From Mizuhopecten yessoensis (Eukaryota), in contig NW_018404492.1 in the NCBI RefSeq assembly GCF_002113885.1, forward strand, positions 5,200,258 to 5,264,257: DNA of 64,000 nt, in the 5' to 3' direction. The translations under genes were made by a program, and so were the position numbers. Below, piece by piece: positions 5,769 to 61,718 of this stretch (its first letter is position 1; each line of letters begins with the position of its first letter). The notes below the pieces were generated by a model. The model did no database searches, was not told the DNA's origin, and worked only from the letters and a program-made list of their open reading frames with translations.

Positions 5769-8700
5769 TTATTTGGATGCATACATGTATTCTGAAAACA
5801 TGAGACCTGTAGCCGAGATCGAGTCACCTAAACCAACAGTTTTTTGTGGATCTTTGCATACCAATACGGGACTAAGTGAAAATTCAAATCCATCAGTCTC
5901 CCATGATATAACAGGTTTTTTTGGATCAAACTCTCTATCAATATCATCAGAAAATGCTTTAAATTTTTTTGGAATTTTTAAATCTACAATGGAAGAATTA
6001 AGCTGCTGAACATCACATGCTTGTTTTCCTGCCATTCTTGACCCGGCAGCCACAGCTGCAGCAGAGTTTGTCCACGCTCCTTTAACATTTCCAATGATAT
6101 GGTATGCAAGACAGTGAAAGTGGACTCTGGTCAGTCTTGATTCTGGGTTACGAGAAGACTGACCATATTGTTGAAGCAACCACATAACCATGTCGCTAGC
6201 CTTGTAGATCTCTGGAGGACCAGCCTGATGGTGGAAATCTGAGCTATGAGGGCCGTTCCCAGCCAGGGAGGCAAATGCAAGTTCCTGTTCATTTAACCCG
6301 AGGGACGAAACTTTTGAAATAACCTGAAAAATAGAAAAGTATCAAACTTAAGAACGCACTCAACAATCAAGGGGAGATAAATGTACTAGTTTTTGAAGAA
6401 TAATTAAATTTAATTTGAATTCCAACAGCATTATTCACAAATATACTTCACAGAAATATGAACACTTGTATTAATAAATTAAAAGACTAATACCTTTGTG
6501 AGTATCGGCTTTACAAAATCTTCATTCGCCATACTTGCCAGTTCTAAATGTACTGGCAATGATTTTGGAATCTTATTTAAACCATCACAGACCACCTGAA
6601 TTCTTCTAATGAAGAAATCTTTTGATTGTCCTTCTAAGATGTGAAGTCCCGATATAAGTACGAGATCTGTTTTAGAGGTGTCAAGAGATTCAAAGTAGGT
6701 TTCCAGCATTGTTGCTTGTGAGTTAGATTCGTCGTAGCTTGTAATGAAGCGATTGGCGACTGGGCTCTGTACATCTCCCCAGGTCTCACCAACACCATAC
6801 TCCATTATCAAATGTACTTCATCTGTGGAAATGTGGCTGGCTGTTGGAATGTTCAAAGATTTTGGCAGCATCTCTAATAGCTTTGGTCCAACTGGTCCAA
6901 TAAAATTTATCTGTAATATTCAAGAATGCTCGTGTAACATCAGTGCTAATAAAAAGAAAAGATATTGCACCAAAAAACTAATAAAAAGAAAAGATATTGC
7001 ACCAAAAAACTAATAAAAAGAAAAGATATTGCACCAAAAAACACTGATCATTTTGTTTATTATTTTTATTTACAGGTACAAAACCTTGTTATTACAAACA
7101 TATATACATACCTTCACTTCTGGAAACTGTTCTGATATTTTACTTGCCATAAGTGCTGCATTGCCTCCAATATAATACTGAAATGCAAAAGTGAATTTGA
7201 GCACTTATAATGACAAAATCATTCTATACTATACAGCGATTACACTGTAACAGTAATTGGAAATGACAATTTTACAAAATAAGTTTCATTTAGACAGTGC
7301 TGCACTGTATATATATAAACTAAATATTTGTACTTTAAAATGTAATACCTGAGCATTTTCCAGTGTATTTCCAGTAGAAACGATCTTTTGAAATATGTCT
7401 TTATCCAGGAAAGCTCTTTCTGCAGCTGATCCTTTGGCAAAGAAATGTGCAAAGGTGTCTTGAAGGTCATCAAGATTTTTTAAAACATCTTTGTTTTCTC
7501 TCCTTCCTGAGGGCACTCGAAGAGCTTTTAGAAGACCCACACCTGGTACAATCAGGTCGACATTGGAATTAATTCTGAAAGACAAGATTATGTAAATAAT
7601 ATGTGTTAATACCAAAGAATCAATGATGACTTCTGAACTATAGTGCAACAATTTAAGAAGTGGTAAATAAAAATATATAAAGGCCAGGCAAGGATTTTAA
7701 CCTAGGACTTCTGAGATTTAGATGAAAATGATCATTGATTTTGATACCTAGTCACCAGTCCAAATCTGCTACAACTGTTACATATATGTATTAGATTCAG
7801 ATAAATGTCAGATCAGCTGACTACACCCATATAGTAGACCAAAATATCTTACTGACTTCAGAGTTCAACTTTCTTGCTACACGTGAAGCTCAAGTGTTTT
7901 TATAACAAGAAACCAAAAATTTCATGATCCAAAGTTATGGACTTGTAATTAAAAAATGACTTTCACAAATTCTTGATCGGGCAGAGATTGTCCTCCATAG
8001 GGTCTTTTGCACAAAAATTAGGACACTAATGTTAATGTTTCCCCCCTTCTTTGCAAAACTCGATTTTTGGCAACCAGGTAGTTGAAATGGTAGAGACTCT
8101 GTCTAAGGTTTGAAGGGTAGTTGGTTTGAGCCCCTGTCTGGCCGTGCATTTTTCCACTCCTTCAACACTTCAGACAGTACACAATAACCAGGTTGGGGAA
8201 AACCACCAACTTGCGTATATATGCAAACTCGCCTATTATACGCCAGATGGAGTATGGATTTGTTACAAAAATAACCCAAATAGCTTTAACAGTAACTTTT
8301 GCAAGATATTATTAAAAATCGCATTAATTTACGACAAGGTGAATAATATATTGCTAAAAGATGTTTATTGAAAGTGTTGGCTACTTAGAAAGTTGATGTA
8401 ACTTTACCGGAATTATTGCATCTATTTTTGGTACTTTCCCACACGCAAATAATGTTTATTTTTGCATTTGTATTATGTTTCATGAATAAATGCGACTTGG
8501 ACAAAAAAAATGAAAAAGTTAAGATTAAAGTGATTTTGGCTATTTTTAGTAACAAATCCATACCCCTATTGCCGTATTATATGCAAGTTAGTGGTTTTCC
8601 CCGACCTGATGACAAGATTTATAATTCAATATCTCTGCCGCTGTGCCAATAAGAGTTTGAAAACGACCAATTAATAACTTTAAAGAACTTTTTATCACAC

Positions 8701-9124
8701 CTGACCAGAGTAGATTTAGTCAACTTAGTCCGAAATAACTGACTATTACAGTATTACTCATTACTATAAGGATTTCCTTTTTTTTTATGGAAATCGTTAA
8801 TTCGGTACCGGTCTCGAAAAGGTAAAAGCAAAATGTCCAGAATGATGATATTGTCTAGTTCGTGGTCTTTTGTCGTTTAAACATGAATTTAAAACATTCA
8901 TATGTGTGAATTGTCAACAGTTATGCGATAACAATACAGGCACACACTAACCCGACGTGTAATCGCTGAAATGTCACCGGTGGTGAAACAACGTGTTTTT
9001 TCCATGCATTGATGATGTCTTCTTCTATTTGCTCTTGATCTACATCCTTTGCTGTATACCAGGTATTGTATACCCACGCCAAACCTATTGCACATATTCC
9101 TACATATAATGTTTTGTAAAACAT
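5769..9124 (-). CDS. ADPGK: ADP-dependent glucokinase, 5 coding exons, 478 aa
   Basis: Exons 9124-8952, 7574-7349, 7177-7112, 6910-6494 and 6323-5769 are all GT-AG with consistent phases (1437 nt). N-terminal hydrophobic anchor MFYKTLYVGICAIGLAWVY. Family motifs GINSNVDL, IGGNAALM, DEVHLIMEY, HLELASM, SLGLNEQEL, RVHFHCL, TVGLGDSIS. Confidence 0.96.
6946..7042. repeat. 32-bp tandem repeat, 3 copies, in an ADPGK intron
   Basis: CTAATAAAAAGAAAAGATATTGCACCAAAAAA. Confidence 0.9.
8189..8608 (+). mobile_element. MITE with CAGGT(C/T)GGGGAAAACCAC TIRs in ADPGK intron 1
   Basis: TIRs at both ends; inverted homologous copy at 61719-62145. Confidence 0.8.
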
Positions 9125-9463: not shown

Positions 9464-12400
9464 ATGGCAGACGACGTTTTGGAGGTGGATATTTGGGAAG
9501 GTGATTGGGAACTTCCCTCCGTGGATTCAGACTGTTTGACTGTCTTGGTATATTGTTAACGCTTTTATTGACATTTCTCATATGTAAAATTATTGCATTG
9601 AAAACTATAGCTTTCCGTTAAATCTTAAATATGCGATCCCTGTACTTCAATAATCCGTAGGTCGGCAAAAGAAATCAGGTCAAAAAACTTATAGACTAAT
9701 AATATAACTACTACTAAGCTTTAGGGATACTAGCTTGAATTTTTGAAGTCTGGACGCTGGCAGAAAATGTCTAGATTCAGAGAAATATTGCTGAAATGCT
9801 ACGAAGGAAGAATTCTGGTCGTTTTCATATGTGCTGGACACACTAAGTGACTAAATACAATATAATGAAATGTAGTTACTGGCACCAGAGACGTGTAAAG
9901 CCAGTAGTATAAACGTCTCTGCTGGCACACATCGATTCATATTATTCAATAGTGTCCATCAATTACCTGTAGTCGTTTCTTTACTTGGTGCATTTTCTTT
10001 ATGAACCAAAGTTTTGGTATTCATTCATACCAGTTGCATCATTATTAATTCGTCTATGCGCGAAATTCAACTTCAGTAACAAAGATAAAAATGTTCATCT
10101 GGAAAATCATGAACCTTAAGAAAATTTGTTCTTCTTTAAATTACTTATCAATGGTAACGGGTTCTTTCACCCTAAATCCCTTTCACGCAAAGGGTTGTTT
10201 CGCCCTAAATCCTGATTGCCCAAGGTTGTTTCGTCGTAATTTTTAAAATTTTATACGCTTATATAATTAATTATTTAAATAAATTAACTTAACTTATTGA
10301 TAAAATTTCTATATTGGTGTTTGGTATATTTCATGTAGAAAAATGTGCATCTCTGTGAGTGCAGAGTCGGCTTTAAACAGCTGCTGTTTGTCGCACTTGC
10401 TTAAAAACAATAGACAATTTTTTTTCAAATTTATTTTAATGATATGGAAGACTAGGAAGACTTAAAACTACTAAAATTGAAAGGAAATACCAAACAATGC
10501 TTCGTCCTAAATTTCCTTGTTTTAGGGTGAAACAACCTAGCTCAAAACAACTTAGGGTGAACAGGATTTCGAGCGAAACAACAGGAACCCGTATCAATAC
10601 ACCAGGGTTGCAATGACCTGTAGGCAGAGCTAAAAAGTGCTTTGTTTCTGAGTTTTGTGACAGATGAATAACAATATGTCTTGAATAGTATGTCCTTCTT
10701 TTATGTGTCCACTAATTAAGTTATTTAACGTATCCTAAAATATATATCAATCAACCTTATTTTATGAAGAACTAGCAATGCAAACTAGCAATAGCTATAT
10801 AGTCAGCATTTGAGTTTTGGTCAGGCATGTCTGTACCCCTCGATATGCATGCCTAATATTCCTGAGGTCAGCTTAGGTCTGAGCCTCTCATTTCTTTTCA
10901 AGTTCAGCTTGTTGAAACAGTTTAACCGGATACGCAAAAGGGGCCCAGTATGATATACAATGTAAATTAGCAATTTTAGCTGAATCATGATACTGTTACA
11001 TGTTTTTGTATGATATATGCCAGCTCAAGACCAACCATTGTTAACTTCCTTAGGCCTTATTCCCTACATGTGGATTTGTATCACAGTTAATAAACTATTT
11101 GTCTTCTAGGCATTTTCAAAGTTTTGTGGAGTCCCATGTAGAGCGGTGAAAAGAAATAATCCAGTATGGACACCATCAGGTAATTTTATCAAGCTGGCAA
11201 AAAGGTGTTGGTCAATTTTTGTGTTAACCACAATTCCTGACTTTGATAGGCAGTTTCAACTTGCATCATTGTTGACCTAAGTTTAGACTGTATATATTAC
11301 ACACGTCATACATAACTCAACAGATGAGTAATATGCATTACAATCTTGCTGCAATTTCATTTGTCCAACCTTTTAAAGTACACAATTAATATTAATATAT
11401 GCTTTTTGTGTTTAGCAATGCAGATGAGTATAGTGTTGTTAAGTTTAATAGCACAATTAATATGTTGGCATGTGAATGTGATTGAAATGCAAACATTTTT
11501 TTCTGTCATTTATTGGCATCCCTGTCAAACTTCAGCACAGCCTTTACCCCTTATAAAAATTACTATGTTATACTATAGCTAGTTTGACTCATGGCTATAA
11601 AGGCAGGCATATAAAACTGGGACTTATCAAGTTAATAAGGGCTAGATTATTCATAGTTTGATAAATATTAACTATTGTACTTCTCACCTTGAATGATTGC
11701 ATATCATTTCCATCATTTTAAACATAAGTTTTCAAGACAACATTTTAAAATTGAGGAAGTTCCCACATATTTCATGTTGTCAAGAATTGCTGTGCGACTA
11801 TCATTTTTTTCTTTCAGGCACATTACCTGTTTTAAGGGCAGATGGAAAGTCTGTGTCAAAGATGTCAGAGATGTTAGAAATTATCAAAAAAAGGGTAAGA
11901 TTTATAATTACCGGTAGTAATATTTGAAAAATCTTTTTTTGGCATTAAAATGTTACTCATTATTGTTTTTCTTTTATTAGGATTTTATTTGTTTATCTAT
12001 TCAAATTGTTGTTTAAAAGAGAAGTGATGCCTTTGTTAAATCATCAATAGTCAAAATAAATTGGAAAAACCTGGTGTATGCATATACCGGTATCATTATC
12101 AGTGAACCATCTCTATTTTCTTCATGATTTTTTTTACTAACACAACAAATATTCTGAAATTTTAATAAACCAGCTTTTAAGAAATTAAGAGGATCATTTG
12201 ATGAATAGGTATGTGATATTATTGTAATGTTGATTTCTTACTCTATTGAATTTTAAGAGTCCAACTGGAGTGACACCCCAGGTGGGTCCAAATAATGCTG
12301 ATGTCAAGGCTTTCTCCTCCTTAATGGAGCAAAAGCTTTTACCTGCAGTAGTAAGTATACATTACCAAGATGATGGAAAGTTTCTAACAAAATAAGATGA

Positions 12401-41200: not shown

Positions 41201-44200
41201 TTTTATCATTTTAAAACCTTATGGTAACCTATAGCTACCAAAACCTTATGAACTGATGGAGCAATTACATAACAAGACATGAGAAAGTACTAAAATCTAA
41301 GCATACAGAAATCACGAAATTACAAAATTTAACCACCCTTTTCTGTGCCAAATACACCAAAATATCTCAAAGTAGAGTATAAGCCTTGATGTGACGCAAA
41401 GTAAGATTTTGAAAAGCAACAAGAAAGTCTTACCTGATTCTACAGATATCTAGGATGAGTGTAACTAAGGCTGGGTCAGACTTCTGCATGGCCCTAAGGA
41501 CATCGTTTGATGAAATACAATCCTCTATTGTGTAGCCACTTCTTGCATCAGGAGGAACAAAGTAACACTGTCCGTTCTCCTCGAAGCCGTGACCGCAAAA
41601 ATAGAAAACGCCATACACACCTTTTCCAAGTAGATTACAATACTCATGAATTGCTGCATTCATTTCCTGTTTTGTCAAGTTTAACAATGAAACCACTTTG
41701 AATTCCAGACTTCTGAAAGCTTCAGCCATCTTTGCAACATCATGGATAGGAGCTTTCAGTGTTGTCTCGTTCATATAGTCATAATTTCCTATCAGCAATG
41801 CGACCTTGTCTGTGGCTGTAATACAATAACTATAAAAGGTCAGAAGGATTATAAGGTTAGTGAAATACATGTGTGCAGTTGAACCTCTAAAATAGCCGAG
41901 ACAATAAATAAACTTCTAAACTGACAAATATATTTTTCTTTTTCTTTCAAGAAATACTGAAATAAGTATCCAAGGGTGCAGCCAGAACCAAGGCTAATCC
42001 TGGTAGCATGACAGCGTTCATATCTTCATGCTCAGCATGGACATACATAACAGGGACTATAAAAGGTGTCCCGTGTGAGAACTGTCCAATCTCGCATGGA
42101 AAGGATCCCTCTGAGTTTTTCGAAAAAGAGTAGGCGAGTAGCGCTGACACAGAGGATAGGGTTAGATTTGTTTTCGGCTGAAAGAACTAGGTTCTCTTTA
42201 TTAGACATTTAGAAGGACTCCAAAACATATATACCAAACCAAACAATAGAATAGGTAGGAACTGGTGTTGCTGGCGGCGGCTCAGTACCTCACATCCTGT
42301 CCAGACTTGGTGATGCTATACGAAGAGTGTTAGGTTAAGGCAAATATTAGGCCTAGGAGCCAGCTTACAATAATTAGACTTATACAGTAAATACATACAG
42401 GATAGACGGCTCCTTATCTAACCTGTCTCCCTCTTCTATCCCTTCACTCCATACTTTATCCCTTCTATTCATTTTCCTGTCTTTTCTTTTTGTCTGCTGG
42501 ATATAACCAAACTACTCGGTAGTGAAGCAGACGTAAAACCTATCAATCAATCAATCAATCAATCAATGGATATACAAGGTAAAAGAGTAGATTGTGTCCT
42601 AACTCAGCTGGGTAACAGGACTATATAGACAAATGGTCAGCTGAAAATTGGACCCCACAGTGCTACACATTGTAACAATCCTTACCTATGAAATGTGAAT
42701 GGTTGAGGCTGTTGTATCATACATTACACTTCAGTAGTCTGACCAGCTAATACAATACACTGTTACAATATACATAGATTTGTACTCTGATTGGCTGAGG
42801 ATGTTGGGATATAAATACTCTGATTGGCTGAGGATGTTGGGATATAAATACTCTGATTGGCTGATGGTGTTGCAATATTCATATCTTTGTTCTCTGATTG
42901 GTTAAGAGTGTTACATTATACATACCTCTGTTCTCTAATTGGTAAAGAGTGTCCTCTGTACTCTGATTGGTTAAGAATGTAACATTATAATGTACATACC
43001 TCTGTACTCTGATTGGTTAAGAGTGTTAAATTATACATTCCACTGTACTCTGATTGGTTAAGAATGTAACATTATACATACCTCTGTACTCTGATTGGTT
43101 AAGAGTGTTAAATTATACATTCCACTTTACTCCGATTGGTTAAGACCGATACAATATACATAACTCTGTACTCTGATTGGTTAAGACCGATACATTATAC
43201 ATACCTCTGTACTCTGACTTGCTGTGGTTGGGAGGAGACTTGATAGACAGACAGGCAGGATGAGAGAGGACGGATTCTTTGGTGTTCGGGCACGTTACAA
43301 CACATTGGTAGGTCCCCTGCATGTTATGGTCCTGAAGGTTGAACATCTTTAGATCTTTCTCTTCACAACCTGCACACATAAATGTGGGGTTACGGTCAAC
43401 CATGGTAAGTTTCCAATAATTGTGAATGCTTGCTATTATCTATTGATACTTTGACTGGTTGTATGAAATCAAAGTGTCCAGACTAACATTATTTTACAGC
43501 ATCCTAATTTAAATGCCAAGGAATTGAAGGGAAGGTAATATTTTTTATAATTCCTTTTTTTAAGAGGGGACAATATTAAAAAAGAACTCTAGTTTGCACA
43601 TCTCTTCTGTAACAGGGAAGGAAAAACGCGCAGCCAGACCGGGGTTCAAACCTGGGACCCTCAAAACTCTAAACGACGCTCTACCAATTGAGCTACCTGG
43701 TCGTCGACAATCGACACAGTCCAGTTCAGCTACATTTTCAATTTGACATCTTGTATAATTTACAGAGCTTACAGTAATACACCTGATTATTCATTTTCCT
43801 CATTTAAAAAGTAATCTAAAGTAGAATGTTAAAAAGTAAAACATGGTTTTACCATCCTTTTGTAAAAAATATTAAAAAAATAAATGTATATATATACAAA
43901 CTGAGCAATAAATAATATTTTTTTAAAGTTAAAGAAAAGTGACATAATTGATCTTGACCATTAGCTTGTACCTTCAATCACAGTTTAGTTTAAACATATG
44001 TTATTGCCAAGCAAATGGATTGGGCACAAGTTATTCCATTTGCTTGACAATAAAATATGTTTAAACTAAACTGTTCAATCACAGCAAAGTCAAGACCCTT
44101 TCCTTCATCTTTGTGTGTGTGTAAAGCATGCATTCATACACACTTGAAGACTGTTTAAAAGTTCTATGAACATTAATTTGTAAAATGTGAGTGTGTGTCT

Positions 44201-50200: not shown

Positions 50201-51697
50201 GATTGACCATGTGGGTGTTCTCTGGATAAAATGGTAACTGCTATATTGAAGGTGCCAGTGTATGATTTTTTTTAAAGTTTAATTCCCGAATATTTGACAA
50301 TTGAAATGTGCATTTCCTTTTTTTATGTTGTTTTTCTTTGCCAGTGTAGAGTCTCAATATGTTGATGTTAACTTGAACTACATAAAAACATCTAGACAAG
50401 GCACACAAAAAAAGAAAAAAAAAGAAGTTTCCTGTTGCAGGTCCGAATTTGTCTTAAAAAAAAATTAATCAAATAAATAAAAAAAAACACAATTCTTCAA
50501 AAAACATCCATAAAATGAGTAGGATTGGCCAAAAAGATAGGTATGGTTGGAAGATGACAACAGGTGTTGCAGTTTTTGCCAAAATATGATTTTTGAAATA
50601 TCTTAATCAAAGTTCATCATAACAAAATGTATTACATTTTTAAGTACCGGTACATATGTGATTTATTTTGGCTTATTTTTACAGCTGAATACAGGCTGCT
50701 TTCCCTAGCAATTTTTTTTTTCAAAATGCAGAACAAATGAATATCTTCAAAATTTTAATAGAAAATAATGCCATATTTCTCTAATTCATGTAGGAACATG
50801 TACAAGCTGTTGTAAAATTTACGTTGAAAAGTCTGTTTAACAGGTAAAAATCTTTTATTTACCATATGGCTTCATATCTATCAGAAGGTTTTCCAGTTTG
50901 AGTTGATCTAGCACGTGGATGAGTTCAGCCACAACCATGCCCCGAGCACCAAGTTCAGAAATTATCCTATTGGTAGGACTACCATCACCAAACACAAACC
51001 GTCCAAACTTGTTCTCTATATCTGTTTGGCTGCAAAGCAAAGATTATTGAGGTTTAAATATTTTGATATACAATGTAAAAGGAAATACCAGAAAACACAA
51101 GATAGATTTTTTTATTTTTTTTTAATAAATGTCCAAAGAAAACAGGGGTATCCCCCGGGGTATATGTTTAACCAAAATAAAAATAATTTATGTAATAAAT
51201 ATACACGTATTATATTTTGGAAAACCCCTCTCATAATAAGTTATGACCTAAAGAGAGCCATAGAATATCAATATTAATCTGATGTTTAAGTACAAAGTGG
51301 CTTATTCAATAATGCAGACCTTGGTTCGAGTTATCTGAAAAATTCCCATCAGTATATATATAGCCACCCACTCCCTCCTCTCATAAAATTTAGAAGAAAA
51401 TGATAGTGATAGTTTGGGTAGATGTTGGGAATGATGGAGGTATTTTTTTTCTCAAATGCATTCCTATTTTATGCTGAGCATGAATATTATACTCTTGGTA
51501 TAAGTTAAGGGCTATTAGGTAATTAACAACCTGAATTCGTAATCATCCCGTAAAGTTGATGCAATCTTAAGAAAGGCACGCCAGCTGCAAGTCTCTGGGT
51601 TGTTGTCCAAACTTCTTTCAATTTCTTGCGTGATCTTTGCTGGCAATTGAGAAATGTTTCTCTGCATGCCGTTGGTTCCTCTTTGCAAGTAATCCAT
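35246..51697 (-). CDS. MALT1: MALT1 paracaspase (death domain, 3 Ig, caspase-like domain, C-terminal Ig, TRAF6 motif), about 825 aa
   Basis: Exons 51697-51531, 51029-50863, 49172-48989, 48265-48099, 47776-47616, 45718-45601, 44913-44899, 44607-44482, 43369-43219 (or to 43205), 42708-42686, 41815-41434, 40916-40812, 39571-39456, 38240-38088, 37611-37451, 36410-36288 and 35404-35246; phases are consistent. Motifs ATDKVALLIGN, catalytic FCGHG and LDICR, IYAT, WLKAH, EFSNVL, DLQKLR, NLGLPLIA. Confidence 0.95.
39625..39853 (-). mobile_element. Second copy of the same SINE, in a MALT1 intron
   Basis: Close reverse-complement match to 30355-30575. 11-bp TSD CATTCAATTTG at 39614 and 39854. Confidence 0.88.
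41434..41815 (-). CDS. MALT1: MALT1 caspase-like catalytic exon (His/Cys dyad)
   Basis: TDKVALLIGNYDY...LLNLTKQEM...VFYFCGHGFE...ILDICR, with an AG acceptor and a GTAAGA donor. Confidence 0.97.
42040..42567 (+). mobile_element. SINE-like retroposon remnant with (ATCA)n tail
   Basis: GGACTATAAA..GTCCCGTGT..GAAAAAGAGTAGG core resembles molluscan Meta-type SINEs (recalled, not verified). 3' end GACGTAAAACC(TATCAATCAATC)n. Confidence 0.4.
42780..43216. repeat. 33-46 bp minisatellite with a CTCTGATTGG core, about 11 copies
   Basis: Repeated TACTCTGATTGG; the last unit merges with the MALT1 exon boundary. Confidence 0.85.
43605..43735 (-). mobile_element. tRNA-head short repeat, second family
   Basis: Minus strand reads GGTAGCTCAATTGGTAGAGCG...GGTTTGAACCCCGG. 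Similar decayed copies at about 8075-8170 (+) and 27430-27520 (-). Confidence 0.6.
43981..44073. mobile_element. hAT-like 93-bp MITE with 8-bp TSD
   Basis: CAG...CTG foldback; TSD TTCAATCA at 43973-43980 and 44074-44081. Confidence 0.75.
45871..47087 (+). mobile_element. HINE/pearl-like element with ~145-bp tandem repeats; spans the assembly gap 46492-46805
   Basis: Same 5' end, TGTGACCTTGAAAG repeats, (GACG)n, 3' hairpin. Same family as 52078-53498. Confidence 0.82.
46492..46805. other. Assembly gap (314 N)
   Basis: N run inside a tandem-repeat element. Confidence 1.
48317..48400. mobile_element. TTAA-targeting mini-MITE (piggyBac/Kolobok-like)
   Basis: TTAA|CTCATTCACCCCTGA ... TCAGGTGTGAATGAG|TTAA. 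Confidence 0.7.
48435..48695. repeat. ~59-bp tandem repeat, about 4.5 copies
   Basis: ATCCCAGTTATTCCCCTTATCTAT..GTTGTCCAAGTTAATG. Confidence 0.85.
49375..50006 (+). mobile_element. Second HINE-like family with ~146-bp repeats
   Basis: Repeats GATGACAAAGTTTTTCTAAAAATAGTAACAGTGACCTTGACC (3-4 copies), (ACAT)n, and a terminal CCCCCTC..GAGGGG hairpin. Related pieces at about 27035-27310 and 25910-25980. Confidence 0.65.
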
Positions 51698-52077
51698 ATT
51701 GATTTATCTGAAAAAGGAACACATTTACACAACTCTCGTTTGAATGTATGTTTTCCATTAAAAAAAGTTCCAAAAAGTGAAAAGAGGATAAATGTTTTAG
51801 TACTTAATATACACAATAAAATTTGACATGAATACGAAATCACAATCAGAGGGTACGGACATTTTCAGACATTTCGGTCATTTTGATTTGGTAACAAAAA
51901 TGTTTCAGTACTTATTTAAGACGTTTTGGTACTTTTAATCAAATGTTTCCATATATTATAAACCCTTTTGTCATTTGTACTTACGTTTTAACATTGTATC
52001 TTATTTACTTGTTGTGACCTGCTTGCTTTTGTTTTTTACTTTTTAGATTCTTCAGCATAAGCATATTTGTGTCTTGA

Positions 52078-57596: not shown

Positions 57597-58784
57597 TATT
57601 TACGTTTTCTCTTCCTTTTATGTTCTTTTTTAACTTATAATTTATATTTAAAATTAAAAGTGCCCGCCTTATCGACAGTCCACACAATTTCGTTCAATAA
57701 TTTGAACAGCGTGCTGATTGGCAAACAAAGTCGTACTTTGAAATTTTAACAAACACTTCAAAATTTTATTCCACAATTCAGTATCAATACAAATGCATAT
57801 GATATGTATATAAGGTGATTTAAGTTTATCAATAGAAATCTGAGCCGAAAGTTAAACTATAAATTGTTCCGATTTTCCCCCGGAACAAATTTCGCGCATG
57901 GATAAATACAGTGAACACCGTGAATCCGACCTTGACCTCAACGAGGGAGTTATTTTTGGAAGTTAATTCGAAGGTTTCTCTTTGGTCTCCAGACGTGAAT
58001 TTATTTGTTGATTGTATGGGAATCTGACTACAGTCGGTAGATTCTATAACAGCCTCGTTATTTGACGTGTCGTGATCAGAAACTGGGGAAACCGTGGCTG
58101 CGAGACGCGTGAAACTCTTAGTTGATTATATCAGAGACGTATTATACGTCTCTGATTATATACATCATCCCTATACATTCTCTATACATCGTGTTTGTAC
58201 ATCATGTACCACATATAAGGGCCAATAGTCCAAGCTTTGGATAAATGTTGACAATATTGACATTTGCGATATTATGATAAGTGAAGATCATAATTATTTT
58301 TCCTATCTAGTGTCAGGGATGTGTCCCTGACAATGTGTATCCACACAAAATCAGCTTGAGATTGAAATTTTGCAGACATAACTATAAAATAAAGGAAATA
58401 TAAAAACAACATTCAGTCAACTGTTATTGTATCAGTTGATTTATATACAATGCATTACAGAATTTTAAACAATCTTTGCTATTACGATTAGTTAATGAAT
58501 CTTTACTTGATCAACAATAATTTAAGATTTTAATAGCATGCAGGCGGCTAGTACCGTACTACCTGTTATAATATCTGTAAAATCATAAGTTATTTTCAGG
58601 TTAAATAAATATATCCATTTTATTTGTTTTAATATTCATATTTCATCACATGTCATTATAATTCTTTACAAAGAAAATGGAATATTTCTCTGATTAAAGT
58701 AGATATAAGTAATATGTATTACAATACCATCTACATCATTTTGAAACAGACTTTAACCAAATTGTGATCAGGTGTGAAAATTGA

Positions 58785-59316
58785 AATGTATGCTAGGTGA
58801 GATTAGGTATTTTAGAAATGTATGCTAGGTGAGATTAGGTATTTTAGAAATGTATGCTAGGTGAGATTAGGTATTTTAGAAATGTATGCTAGGTGAGATT
58901 AGGTATTTTAGAAATGTATGCTAGGTGAGATTAGGTATTTTAGAAATGTATGCTAGGTGAGATTAGGTATTTTAGAAATGTATGCTAGGTGAGATTAGGT
59001 ATTTTAGAAATGTATGCTAGGTGAGATTAGGTATTTTAGAAATGTATGCTAGGTGAGATTAGGTATTTTAGAAATGTATGCTAGGTGAGATTAGGTATTT
59101 TAGAAATGTATGCTAGGTGAGATTAGGTATTTTAGAAATGTATGCTAGGTGAGATTAGGTATTTTAGAAATGTATGCTAGGTGAGATTAGGTATTTTAGA
59201 AATGTATGTTAGGTGAGATTAGGTATTTTAGAAATGTATGTTAGGTGAGATTAGGTATTTTAGAAATGTATTCTAGGTGAGATTAGGTATTTTAGAAATG
59301 AATTCTAGGTGAGACT
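58785..59316. repeat. 32-bp minisatellite, about 17 copies (TAGAAATGTATGCTAGGTGAGATTAGGTATTT)
   Basis: Near-identical direct repeats with no spacers. Confidence 0.95.
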
Positions 59317-59507
59317 AAACCATTTAAATGATTCGACGACAGACCGATATGAAAAAAGTCGATAAAACGTCAGAATAATTCGGACTACAGGAGAACGGAC
59401 TCTCTCTATTACTATATTAATATATTTGCATATTTTAACTAGTAAAACGTTGTTATTTGTGGAAAAATGTTGGGGTGGGAGGGTGTGTAGCTTGGACTGT
59501 GTAATAC

Positions 59508-60327
59508 CACGGAATTAGATTATCTAAGTCCGTGGTAATACTCAACTATAGAATCACCAGTCAAGAACTAAACACTAATGAATATTCAATTCACACGATA
59601 GAGGCAGCATGTGTATCTATATGCGCACTGAAACAATTAGGTCAACGCAGGGGTGTCACTTGCGCTGGTGACACCCCCTTGGATCCGCCTCTGGCTAATC
59701 GTCAAGCTGAAGTTAGATGCAGGTTGTATTATAACGGGAATGCTAATATGTGCAAAATCTGATATATATTATATGCGGAAATTCGCACCGGTTCGCTACA
59801 GCTAGTTAAAACAAATTCTGTCTCAGCTCTGTATAATACCATCAATAAGATCCTCGTCACAAAAATCTAGATTTAACTATTTACACGTAGCATGCAACAA
59901 CACAGAAGCTTAATTGTTTCCCCCTACCACGGAATTAGATTAGTCCGTTATTTAAGTCCTTGCCCCTACAACAGCTGAATAATTTTTAACTCACAAACTT
60001 TGAACTCATTGAAAACAAATAAACATTTTATATAACTTAAATCAATGTAGAAAATAGGCCTTATAAAGGCTTTTTAATTTTAGTTGTAGTCCGCGTAAGT
60101 ATTGCTACTTAACAAACGGTACTATTATTTAAAATAACGTAATAACGAAATAACGGCAAGTGTCTGTAAAGGAAACGTTTTTTTTTTTTAAATTGTCGAT
60201 TCCATCCAATGACACTAGAAATGATTGGCGGCCTGACACGGGGTCGTTTACATGGACAGTCAACTTGATGTACGTTATATGTATCAGATTAATATGTTTT
60301 ATCACGGACTTGGATTCTAATTCCGTG
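59508..60327. mobile_element. Three 25-35 bp CACGGA(A/C)TT palindromes, each with its own 7-bp TSD
   Basis: 59508-59534 (TSD GTAATAC), 59928-59962 (TSD CCCCTAC), 60303-60327 (TSD GTTTTAT). Confidence 0.7.
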
Positions 60328-60462
60328 GTTTTATATAACCTTTACGGCAAGTTTATTGCAACGTCGAATACAACTCCGCACACAACACTAGTCTCAATTT
60401 TGAGTACTACTCACTGGATAGAAATATTCATCCTGCCCTCTCGCATAAAATTTAACATTAAT

Positions 60463-60496
60463 CAGAGACGTATAATACATGTATTATACGTCTCTG
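60463..60496. mobile_element. 34-bp perfect palindrome with 7-bp TSD (P-element-like footprint, family CAGAGACGT)
   Basis: CATTAAT|CAGAGACGTATAATACA-TGTATTATACGTCTCTG|CATTAAT. Siblings at 58132-58154 and 9886-9921. Confidence 0.7.
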
Positions 60497-61153
60497 CATT
60501 AATTAACCAAGAAACGGAGAATATTCACTGTAATGCATTTTCACTTTATAAAATATGTATCTGTACGACAGTGCAGACAATTTTTTGTCAAATGTTCAGG
60601 GCGATATCCGCCCCATTATCTTATATCAGTTTTACACTATGATTTTGTTTTCTTTGTAAATAATTCCACAGGAGCCTACAATTCTGTCAAAATTTAACAA
60701 TGACAGTAACACAAAAATATACCTATAATATGCATATTATAGTATTTTTTCTATTACTGTTCTTGTTAATTTTAATTCATAAAGCCATACCTATGAGAAG
60801 ATATGTCATTAATATCATTTCATGATGTGCGGGATCGACATTACTCCGTGTACAACTTGTAAGTTAAGTTGGCTAGGGACCGTAACATAAATCATCCGCT
60901 GTGATCTTGAAATAATCGAATGCGCCCCACTCTTGTTGATCGGAAGTCTTCTAGGACTTTCATAATTATACACTGGGTCATTCGGAAGGATGCTCTGGCT
61001 CCATTTTTTCCGCGAATTCTCACTGCGCAAACGTTAGAGATGCTGAAAATGTAACTTCCGGGAAGATGAAGATGGTTGTTGATTTTTTTTGGAAGGGAGC
61101 AAAATGATATGTAAGGGATTTTTGAAGACGTGAATCTATCTCTCACCCTCAAA

Positions 61154-61412
61154 ATGGGTAAATTGAAGTGTTTTGAGATAATCATGTCGGAAAACAAAAC
61201 AGTTTTCCATCCCGGTGAAAAGGTAGTCGGGAAGGTTGTGGTCGAGTTGAAAGGCGATATGAAGATGAGATCTTTGCGAATTTTTATGAGAGGTGTCGCC
61301 AAGGTGCATTGGACTGAAAGTCGAAGTACAGGCAGTCGACTGGGCTCCTACACAGAGCATTACAATGCAGAGGTCGAGTACTTCTTCAAAAGACAGGTGC
61401 TTTTCGGTGGAG
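61154..61412 (+). CDS. Alpha-arrestin (arrestin domain-containing, ARRDC-like), first coding exon; gene continues beyond the window
   Basis: MGKLKCFEIIMSENKTVFHPGEKVVGKVVVEL...FMRGVAKVHWTE...YNAEVEYF is a typical Arrestin_N start. Phase-1 donor G|GTGGGT. Confidence 0.9.
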
Positions 61413-61718
61413 GTGGGTATCAACAGTAAAGAACCAACTGCAATCTGATATGCATAGCAGCTGAGTTTGTATCTAATTGAGTAACACTTACATTTTATAT
61501 ATAGTTGCAGATATGTTTAATAAAATTTATTGTTGAGACACCTTTCGTAATTAAGTATAACATAAAAAAAACCTGAAAAAATGCTTTTGAGATTTATGGA
61601 ATTTGGATGATTTTTAAGTTTTCGTTTAAAAGTTAGATATTTACAGTTCTTTACTGCAGTAACTGTATAACTTATAAAAGGAGTCATTATGTTTACAAAC
61701 AAAATGTCCAGATGTGGT

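Follow-up and report, generated by a model that had tools for sequence, protein, structure and literature searches.

The window analysed here is a 64-kb stretch of the genome of Mizuhopecten yessoensis. It contains six short palindromes, hereafter referred to as scars, each lying between two copies of a 7-bp target site duplication (TSD). They belong to two families, with CACGGA(A/C)TT ends (family 1) and CAGAGACGT ends (family 2), and five of them are clustered upstream of an arrestin-domain gene. The features of the window are listed below, with the strand omitted where none was assigned.

5769-6191, 6479-6871 and 7286-7651, minus strand: exons of a putative ADPGK-like gene (7286-7651 covers profile positions 7-85)
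9879..9928: sixth scar (family 2), 36 bp at 9886-9921, TSD CTGGCAC on both sides
41430-41870, minus strand: caspase exon of a putative MALT1-like gene (Peptidase_C14 match)
50858..51703, minus strand: probable death-domain exons of the MALT1-like gene, assigned by eye, no Pfam match
58125..58161: family-2 scar, 23 bp at 58132-58154 (CAGAGACGTATTATACGTCTCTG), TSD ATTATAT on both sides
58783..59314: 32-bp minisatellite inside the scar cluster, 16.6 copies, 99% matches
59501..59541, plus strand: scar 1 (family 1), 27 bp at 59508-59534, TSD GTAATAC at 59501-59507 and 59535-59541
59921..59969, plus strand: scar 2 (family 1), 35 bp at 59928-59962, TSD CCCCTAC on both sides
60296..60334, minus strand: scar 3 (family 1), 25 bp at 60303-60327, TSD GTTTTAT on both sides
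60456..60503: family-2 scar, 34 bp at 60463-60496, TSD CATTAAT on both sides
61154-61429, plus strand: first coding exon of an arrestin-domain (ARRDC-like) gene, from its open reading frame (Arrestin_N, E 1.1e-12, profile positions 1-80)

The gene downstream of the cluster is confirmed by its Arrestin_N match and is of the alpha-arrestin/ARRDC type. With the MALT1-like gene on the minus strand it forms a divergent pair, and the repeat-rich spacer of ~9.4 kb between them holds the scar cluster, which spans 0.66-3.0 kb upstream of the ARRDC ATG; the nearest scar (60463-60496) is 658 bp upstream. The ADPGK-like gene has the sixth scar on its 5' side, and a candidate first exon of this gene would be located at about 8924-9121. 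Very high-copy repeats were observed at 57700-58090 and 59276-59472 (summed contig depth 45,000-90,000, versus ~10 for single-copy DNA), with sharp repeat edges at 59333 and 59387; RNA reads mapped to these repeats. Two further short inverted repeats, TGTCAGGGA...TCCCTGACA at 58310-58335 and GGGGTGTCAC...GTGACACCCC at 59650-59680, had no recognisable 7-bp TSD. Scars and duplicated targets together make up ~200 bp of the ARRDC upstream spacer, a modest practical consequence, and the scars themselves would do nothing other than lengthen the spacer by ~32-42 bp each.

The three family-1 scars differ in the way their two ends are joined. Scar 1 (CACGGAATTAGATTATCTAAGTCCGTG, left and right halves CACGGAATTAGATTA and TCTAAGTCCGTG) retains 15 nt of either end, overlapping in a 3-nt microhomology (TTA), and has the most frequent form genome-wide. 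In scar 2, ~16 nt from the left end are followed by 2-3 nt of filler and then by ~16-17 nt from the right end; the right-hand part carries 2-3 substitutions, among them the one that turned the terminal CCGTG into CCTTG (...AAGTCCTTG). Scar 3 is a blunt join of 12 nt of the left end and 13 nt of the right end (ATCCAAG variant). The family-2 scar at 60463-60496 is a perfect palindrome, with 17 + 17 nt of the family-2 ends. The motif CACGGAMTT occurred five times in the window (0.32 expected; five or more in 0 of 100 shuffles), and all five occurrences were confined to 59.5-60.3 kb. When the window was scanned without a family motif, for CA...TG palindromes flanked by a 7-bp TSD, five matches were obtained, versus 0-1 in 20 shuffles; these were scars 1 and 3 and the three family-2 scars at 58132-58154, 60463-60496 and 9886-9921. 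The density of the cluster, five scars in 2.4 kb, compares with an expectation of ~0.006. The original prediction had listed three palindromes, 27, 35 and 25 bp long and the third in reverse orientation, with a different perfect 7-bp TSD for each, within a set of five events of two families in the 2.4 kb upstream of the arrestin start; all of these elements were recovered here, the three palindromes at the positions given.

Genome-wide searches were performed on the 988-Mb assembly. The family-1 pattern CACGGAATTAGAT-N(0-30)-AAGTCCGTG gave 1,591 exact matches, whereas the reversed pattern, used as a control, gave none. Nineteen different lengths, from 23 to 48 bp, were present among the first 100 of the 1,591 matches, so the fixed identical length that would have indicated true micro-MITEs was not observed. 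The most frequent length was 27 bp (36/100), followed by 29, 31 and 35 bp, and a single exact 27-mer accounted for ~28/100 of these first copies. Family 2 (CAGAGACGTAT...ATACGTCTCTG) was found at 819 sites, with several end sub-types. Across the genome, family 1 had only 6 left-left sites as against 1,591 left-right sites, and most of the 6 were point mutants of left-right scars. Furthermore, a genome search with hybrid patterns yielded 11 matches and essentially no true family-1/family-2 hybrid scars. This polarity, together with the virtual absence of hybrids, indicates that the two families are separate, polarised elements. The 11 matches were mostly complete family-1 scars nested in a family-2 terminus (for example, G000:C942:586467-586511, C4404:978206-978254 and C4552:67985-68038), in which GTAATAT/GTAATAC of the family-2 end served as the 7-bp target; one P-type family has thus inserted repeatedly into the ends of another P-type family. 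Our literature searches turned up no account of scars of this kind in bivalves.

The junctions were analysed by exact matching to the 17-nt ends CACGGAATTAGATTAGA (left) and TGTTATCTAAGTCCGTG (right) in an unbiased sample of 30 scars. The retained sequence ranged from 13 to 17 nt for the left end and from 9 to 17 nt for the right end, with the lower bounds set by the search pattern. The upper limit was 17-18 nt for the left end and 17 nt for the right end, with variable filler beyond. Fifteen junctions had 1-3 nt of microhomology, two were blunt and 13 contained 1-12 nt of filler, and the variation among copies was confined to the centre of the element, where both ends meet. The dominant 27-mer corresponds to a join at the longest microhomology on offer (TTA). 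The common 35-bp class is composed of either 17+T+17 or 18+17 nt, given which the cut may be at 17 or 18 nt. The filler of a 48-bp family-1 scar (G000:C657:711404-711451) includes 12 nt from a family-2 end, and a family-2 scar (711477-711517) is located only 26 bp away on the same contig; the filler looks like a templated insertion, copied from the neighbouring scar.

The target site was characterised with 54 distinct scars from the fetched loci. The TSD is exactly 7 bp long, being perfect in 31 of the 54 and having one mismatch in 14 more, whereas an 8-bp duplication fits only one scar. In the 31 perfect sites, G (20/31), T (24/31), A (24/31) and C (17/31) define the consensus GTNNNAC, and the palindrome is extended by T at position -3 (25/31) and A at position +9 (21/31), giving T-NN-GTNNNAC-NN-A. 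Members of the P superfamily have TSDs of 7-8 bp, and those of its 7-bp branch are associated with a palindromic target of the GTANTAC type; the scallop scars have both features. P-superfamily termini follow the rule 5'-CANRG ... CYNTG-3', with which both family 1 (CACGG...CCGTG) and family 2 (CAGAG...CTCTG) agree, as had been pointed out for CACGG in the original prediction. In Galileo, a member of the P superfamily, the TSDs are 7 bp long and the consensus GTANTAC lies within a palindromic motif (PMC4168063); the TSD of scar 1, GTAATAC, agrees with it letter for letter.

We therefore interpret the three family-1 palindromes as scars left by the excision of a single transposon family, polarised and of the cut-and-paste type, within the 7-bp-TSD branch of the P superfamily (Galileo, 1360-like), and consider this reading to have a probability of about 0.85. 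It rests on the capped ends, the microhomology and filler junctions and the 7-bp palindromic target, which together point to P-type excision followed by end joining; the footprint reading already proposed from the window is well supported by the variable lengths, the central position of the variation and the 17-18 nt retention ceiling. The retention of no more than ~17 nt per end is as expected after staggered cleavage of the P type, and we know of no other superfamily whose scars hold ~17 nt from both ends. Cleavage by the P transposase is unusual in that the cuts at either end are staggered by 17 nt (PMC7776569; PMC10983969). Each element once entered a palindromic T-NN-GTNNNAC-NN-A target, with duplication of 7 bp, and its remnant consists of at most 17-18 nt of the left end and at most 17 nt of the right end, joined by microhomology of 1-3 nt or by a short filler. 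By the established P-element mechanism, the transposase would have cut the 3' strand at the tip of the element and the 5' strand ~17 nt inside, so that 17 nt of transposon sequence stayed on the donor flanks as 3' overhangs. Sealing by end joining, of the microhomology or polymerase-theta type, would then have followed.

The excision scars of the P element are textbook matter in Drosophila genetics. As in those footprints, the scallop scars keep the TSD on both sides and at most ~17 nt of each inverted-repeat end, the junctions have microhomology or filler and the termini are CA...TG (CANRG). However, the TSD is 7 bp long here and 8 bp long in the Drosophila P element, and, unlike laboratory revertants, the scallop scars are natural, fixed and present in thousands in a mollusc genome, in which the element is known almost only from its scars. 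Galileo and 1360 share with the scallop family a 7-bp TSD and a palindromic GTANTAC-type core in a longer palindromic target, but the flanking positions of Galileo (AANGT/ACNTT) differ from the T at -3 and A at +9 of the scallop target (PMC4168063). Furthermore, the Galileo/1360 branch is from Drosophila, whereas the host here is a bivalve, in which no full element was seen and hence no long foldback terminal inverted repeats (TIRs) are known.

Other classes were considered. Elements of the hAT superfamily have 8-bp TSDs and their footprints are not known to retain TIR sequence; a hAT origin was rejected, given a TSD of 7 bp and the 9-17 nt of each TIR kept in the scallop scars. Dada transposons, with TSDs of 6-7 bp, insert into tRNA and snRNA genes. 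Their TSD length overlaps with that of the scallop family, but the scallop target is a generic palindrome rather than an RNA gene, and, for tRNA genes, none was present in 40 scar loci, a result that does not fit Dada. It could also be argued that the 25-35-bp palindromes are micro-MITEs, themselves mobile and amplified by transposition, rather than scars. They do resemble MITEs in being short and numerous and in having TIRs and TSDs, and the exact 27-mer is frequent among the first copies; one copy in three belongs to the 27-bp class, and the 27-bp unit itself might be mobilised. MITEs, however, are units of one length with one conserved interior, whereas the 19 lengths in 100 copies and the variable centre of the scallop sequences leave no fixed unit. 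All the variation is central and takes the form of end-joining junctions, with microhomology and untemplated or templated filler, the dominant 27-mer is the exact product predicted from the longest microhomology (TTA) and end retention stops at 17-18 nt. We thus regard amplification as micro-MITEs as improbable. Under the P-type excision reading, the scars would indicate that the 17-nt staggered cut of the P transposase is conserved in a lophotrochozoan and would provide a spectrum of germ-line end-joining junctions in a bivalve, with microhomology as well as filler, some of it templated. A single genome with natural, fixed scars in the thousands constitutes an unusually readable record, from which past transpositions can be counted and mapped although the element itself is nearly gone.

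The flanking sequences were unique in 28 of the 30 sampled loci, and, in the window, scars 2 and 3 are located in single-copy DNA. Both are spanned by contigs from three other individuals (X5, X6 and X10 for scar 3), originating from three studies. The original prediction had suggested checking for population polymorphism; no presence/absence polymorphism was seen for scars 2 and 3 in the contigs of these three individuals, in all of which they are present. Scar 1 was bridged by none of the listed contigs, because assemblies break at the repeated 27-mer. For the small indels at 60315 and 60479, the best explanation is that sequence from other scars was mapped there. Scars copied as passengers with a larger repeat, and thus not representing separate events, do occur elsewhere in the genome. 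Five loci (L057, L060, L065, L071 and L074) share one scar (...TTAGATTATATAAGTCCGTA), with 99-100% identity across +/-440 bp, and correspond to a young repeat carrying the scar as a passenger, and a second group (L067, L070, L077 and L079) lies in the CCCATACCACCCAATAC satellite-like repeat. For the window, however, this explanation is already refuted and has a negligible probability, since TSD, junction and orientation vary among the three scars, the DNA around scars 2 and 3 is single-copy and no genomic match was found to span scar 1 plus both its flanks. The independence of the three insertions, as originally proposed from their TSDs, is therefore confirmed by their junctions, orientation and unique flanks.

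The scars are not uniformly distributed in the genome. Among the first 100 family-1 scars, 15 had a different family-1 scar within 2 kb (~0.6 expected), and 9 of the first 50 family-2 sites were located at most 2 kb from a listed family-1 scar (~0.3 expected), or 8/49 after removal of one passenger case. Similarly, ~183 kb of sequence around family-1 scars contained 5 strict family-2 scars (0.15 expected), as against 0 in 91 kb of control loci. The two families therefore co-cluster ~28-fold above expectation, which partly upholds the hotspot inferred from the window; its promoter-proximal character is no more than suggestive. P elements hop preferentially to nearby sites (PMC7776569), and the cluster could accordingly be the trail of one locally hopping element, repeatedly excised and reinserted nearby, in a region with no special property. 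The frequency of same-family pairs within 2 kb, ~23 times the expectation, is in keeping with such behaviour. Nevertheless, a single walker predicts no co-clustering with a second family that has different ends and forms no hybrid scars with the first, and such co-clustering is precisely what was observed. This argues against local hopping as the sole cause, a possibility that we find doubtful, although hopping and regional preference may act together and hopping is likely to contribute to the cluster. The co-clustering of the two families is not explained by local hopping, and the cluster is thus likely to reflect a regional insertion preference common to two distinct P-type families, the preferred regions being most likely accessible germ-line chromatin. 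Cross-family co-clustering suggests shared integration hotspots, which could be compared with chromatin data.

A narrower version of this interpretation, proposed in the original prediction, equates the hotspots with promoters in particular, by analogy with the Drosophila P element, which favours promoters and replication origins (PMC7776569). The window cluster, placed between two divergent genes and 0.66-3.0 kb upstream of the ARRDC ATG, would be consistent with it, as would the fact that both scar sites of the window are located 5' of a gene (ARRDC or ADPGK-like), although these are two cases only. We carried out a survey of 27 independent loci, based on open reading frames and Pfam matches and too crude to settle the matter, in which a recognisable gene start had a scar in the 1.5 kb upstream of it at only one locus (L030). 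This 27-bp family-1 scar (1501-1527) lies ~0.9 kb upstream of a SAYSvFN open reading frame (2367-2741, E 4e-28), which is probably the start of a SAYSD1-like gene. About 8 of the 27 loci instead adjoin retroelement fragments, as judged by eye, with one weak RVT_1 match. Furthermore, in one raw RNA run, the ARRDC exon received no reads that could place the transcription start site; reads fell only on high-copy repeats. The link between scars and promoters is therefore only suggestive, and we hold the equation of hotspots with promoters to be rather unlikely, with the broader regional preference remaining the favoured reading.

The autonomous parent element, the identification of which had also been proposed, was not found: neither the P-transposase loci nor the 18-nt left end with its context led to an element with CACGGA ends. 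Genes for P-type transposases do occur in this genome, a point in favour of the P-type reading: the P-type RNase-H domain (PF21787) had 25 matches, and CACGGA ends were present within 1.5 kb on either side in none of the 25. One of these matches lies in a stop-free frame of 1,077 aa (L031, G000:C5526:69134-72574, from the profile match), which may represent either a P-type transposase that is intact or a THAP9-like gene that has been domesticated. Nearly every genomic occurrence of the 18-nt family-1 left end sits in a scar, and a longer continuation of 25 nt is common to only two sites, leaving at most two candidate parent left ends:

G000:C4694:1043596-1043620, minus strand: candidate parent left end, shared 25-nt continuation
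G000:C5037:13457-13481, plus strand: candidate parent left end, shared 25-nt continuation

A scar-type end was found physically linked to a P-like transposase only for family 2, at a locus (L056) where a family-2-type end is located 230 bp from P-like RNaseH_N and GBD open reading frames. This link is weak and only suggestive, because, as revealed by a DNA search, the stretch between the end and the reading frames is filled by an unrelated high-copy repeat.

With ~1,600 or more scars and at most two candidate ends, the CACGGA family could, tentatively, be viewed as a 'ghost' transposon, the scars of which form a fossil map of germ-line P-type integration. If so, the lifetime number of hops of the family would be countable, and the co-hit regions of 1-3 kb may correspond to promoters, origins or other open chromatin. 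Another dense multi-family hotspot was observed at locus L082 (1555-1800), where an unpaired left end of family 1, a degenerate family-1 scar in reverse orientation and a family-2 scar (TSD CCTCAAG) lie within 210 bp.
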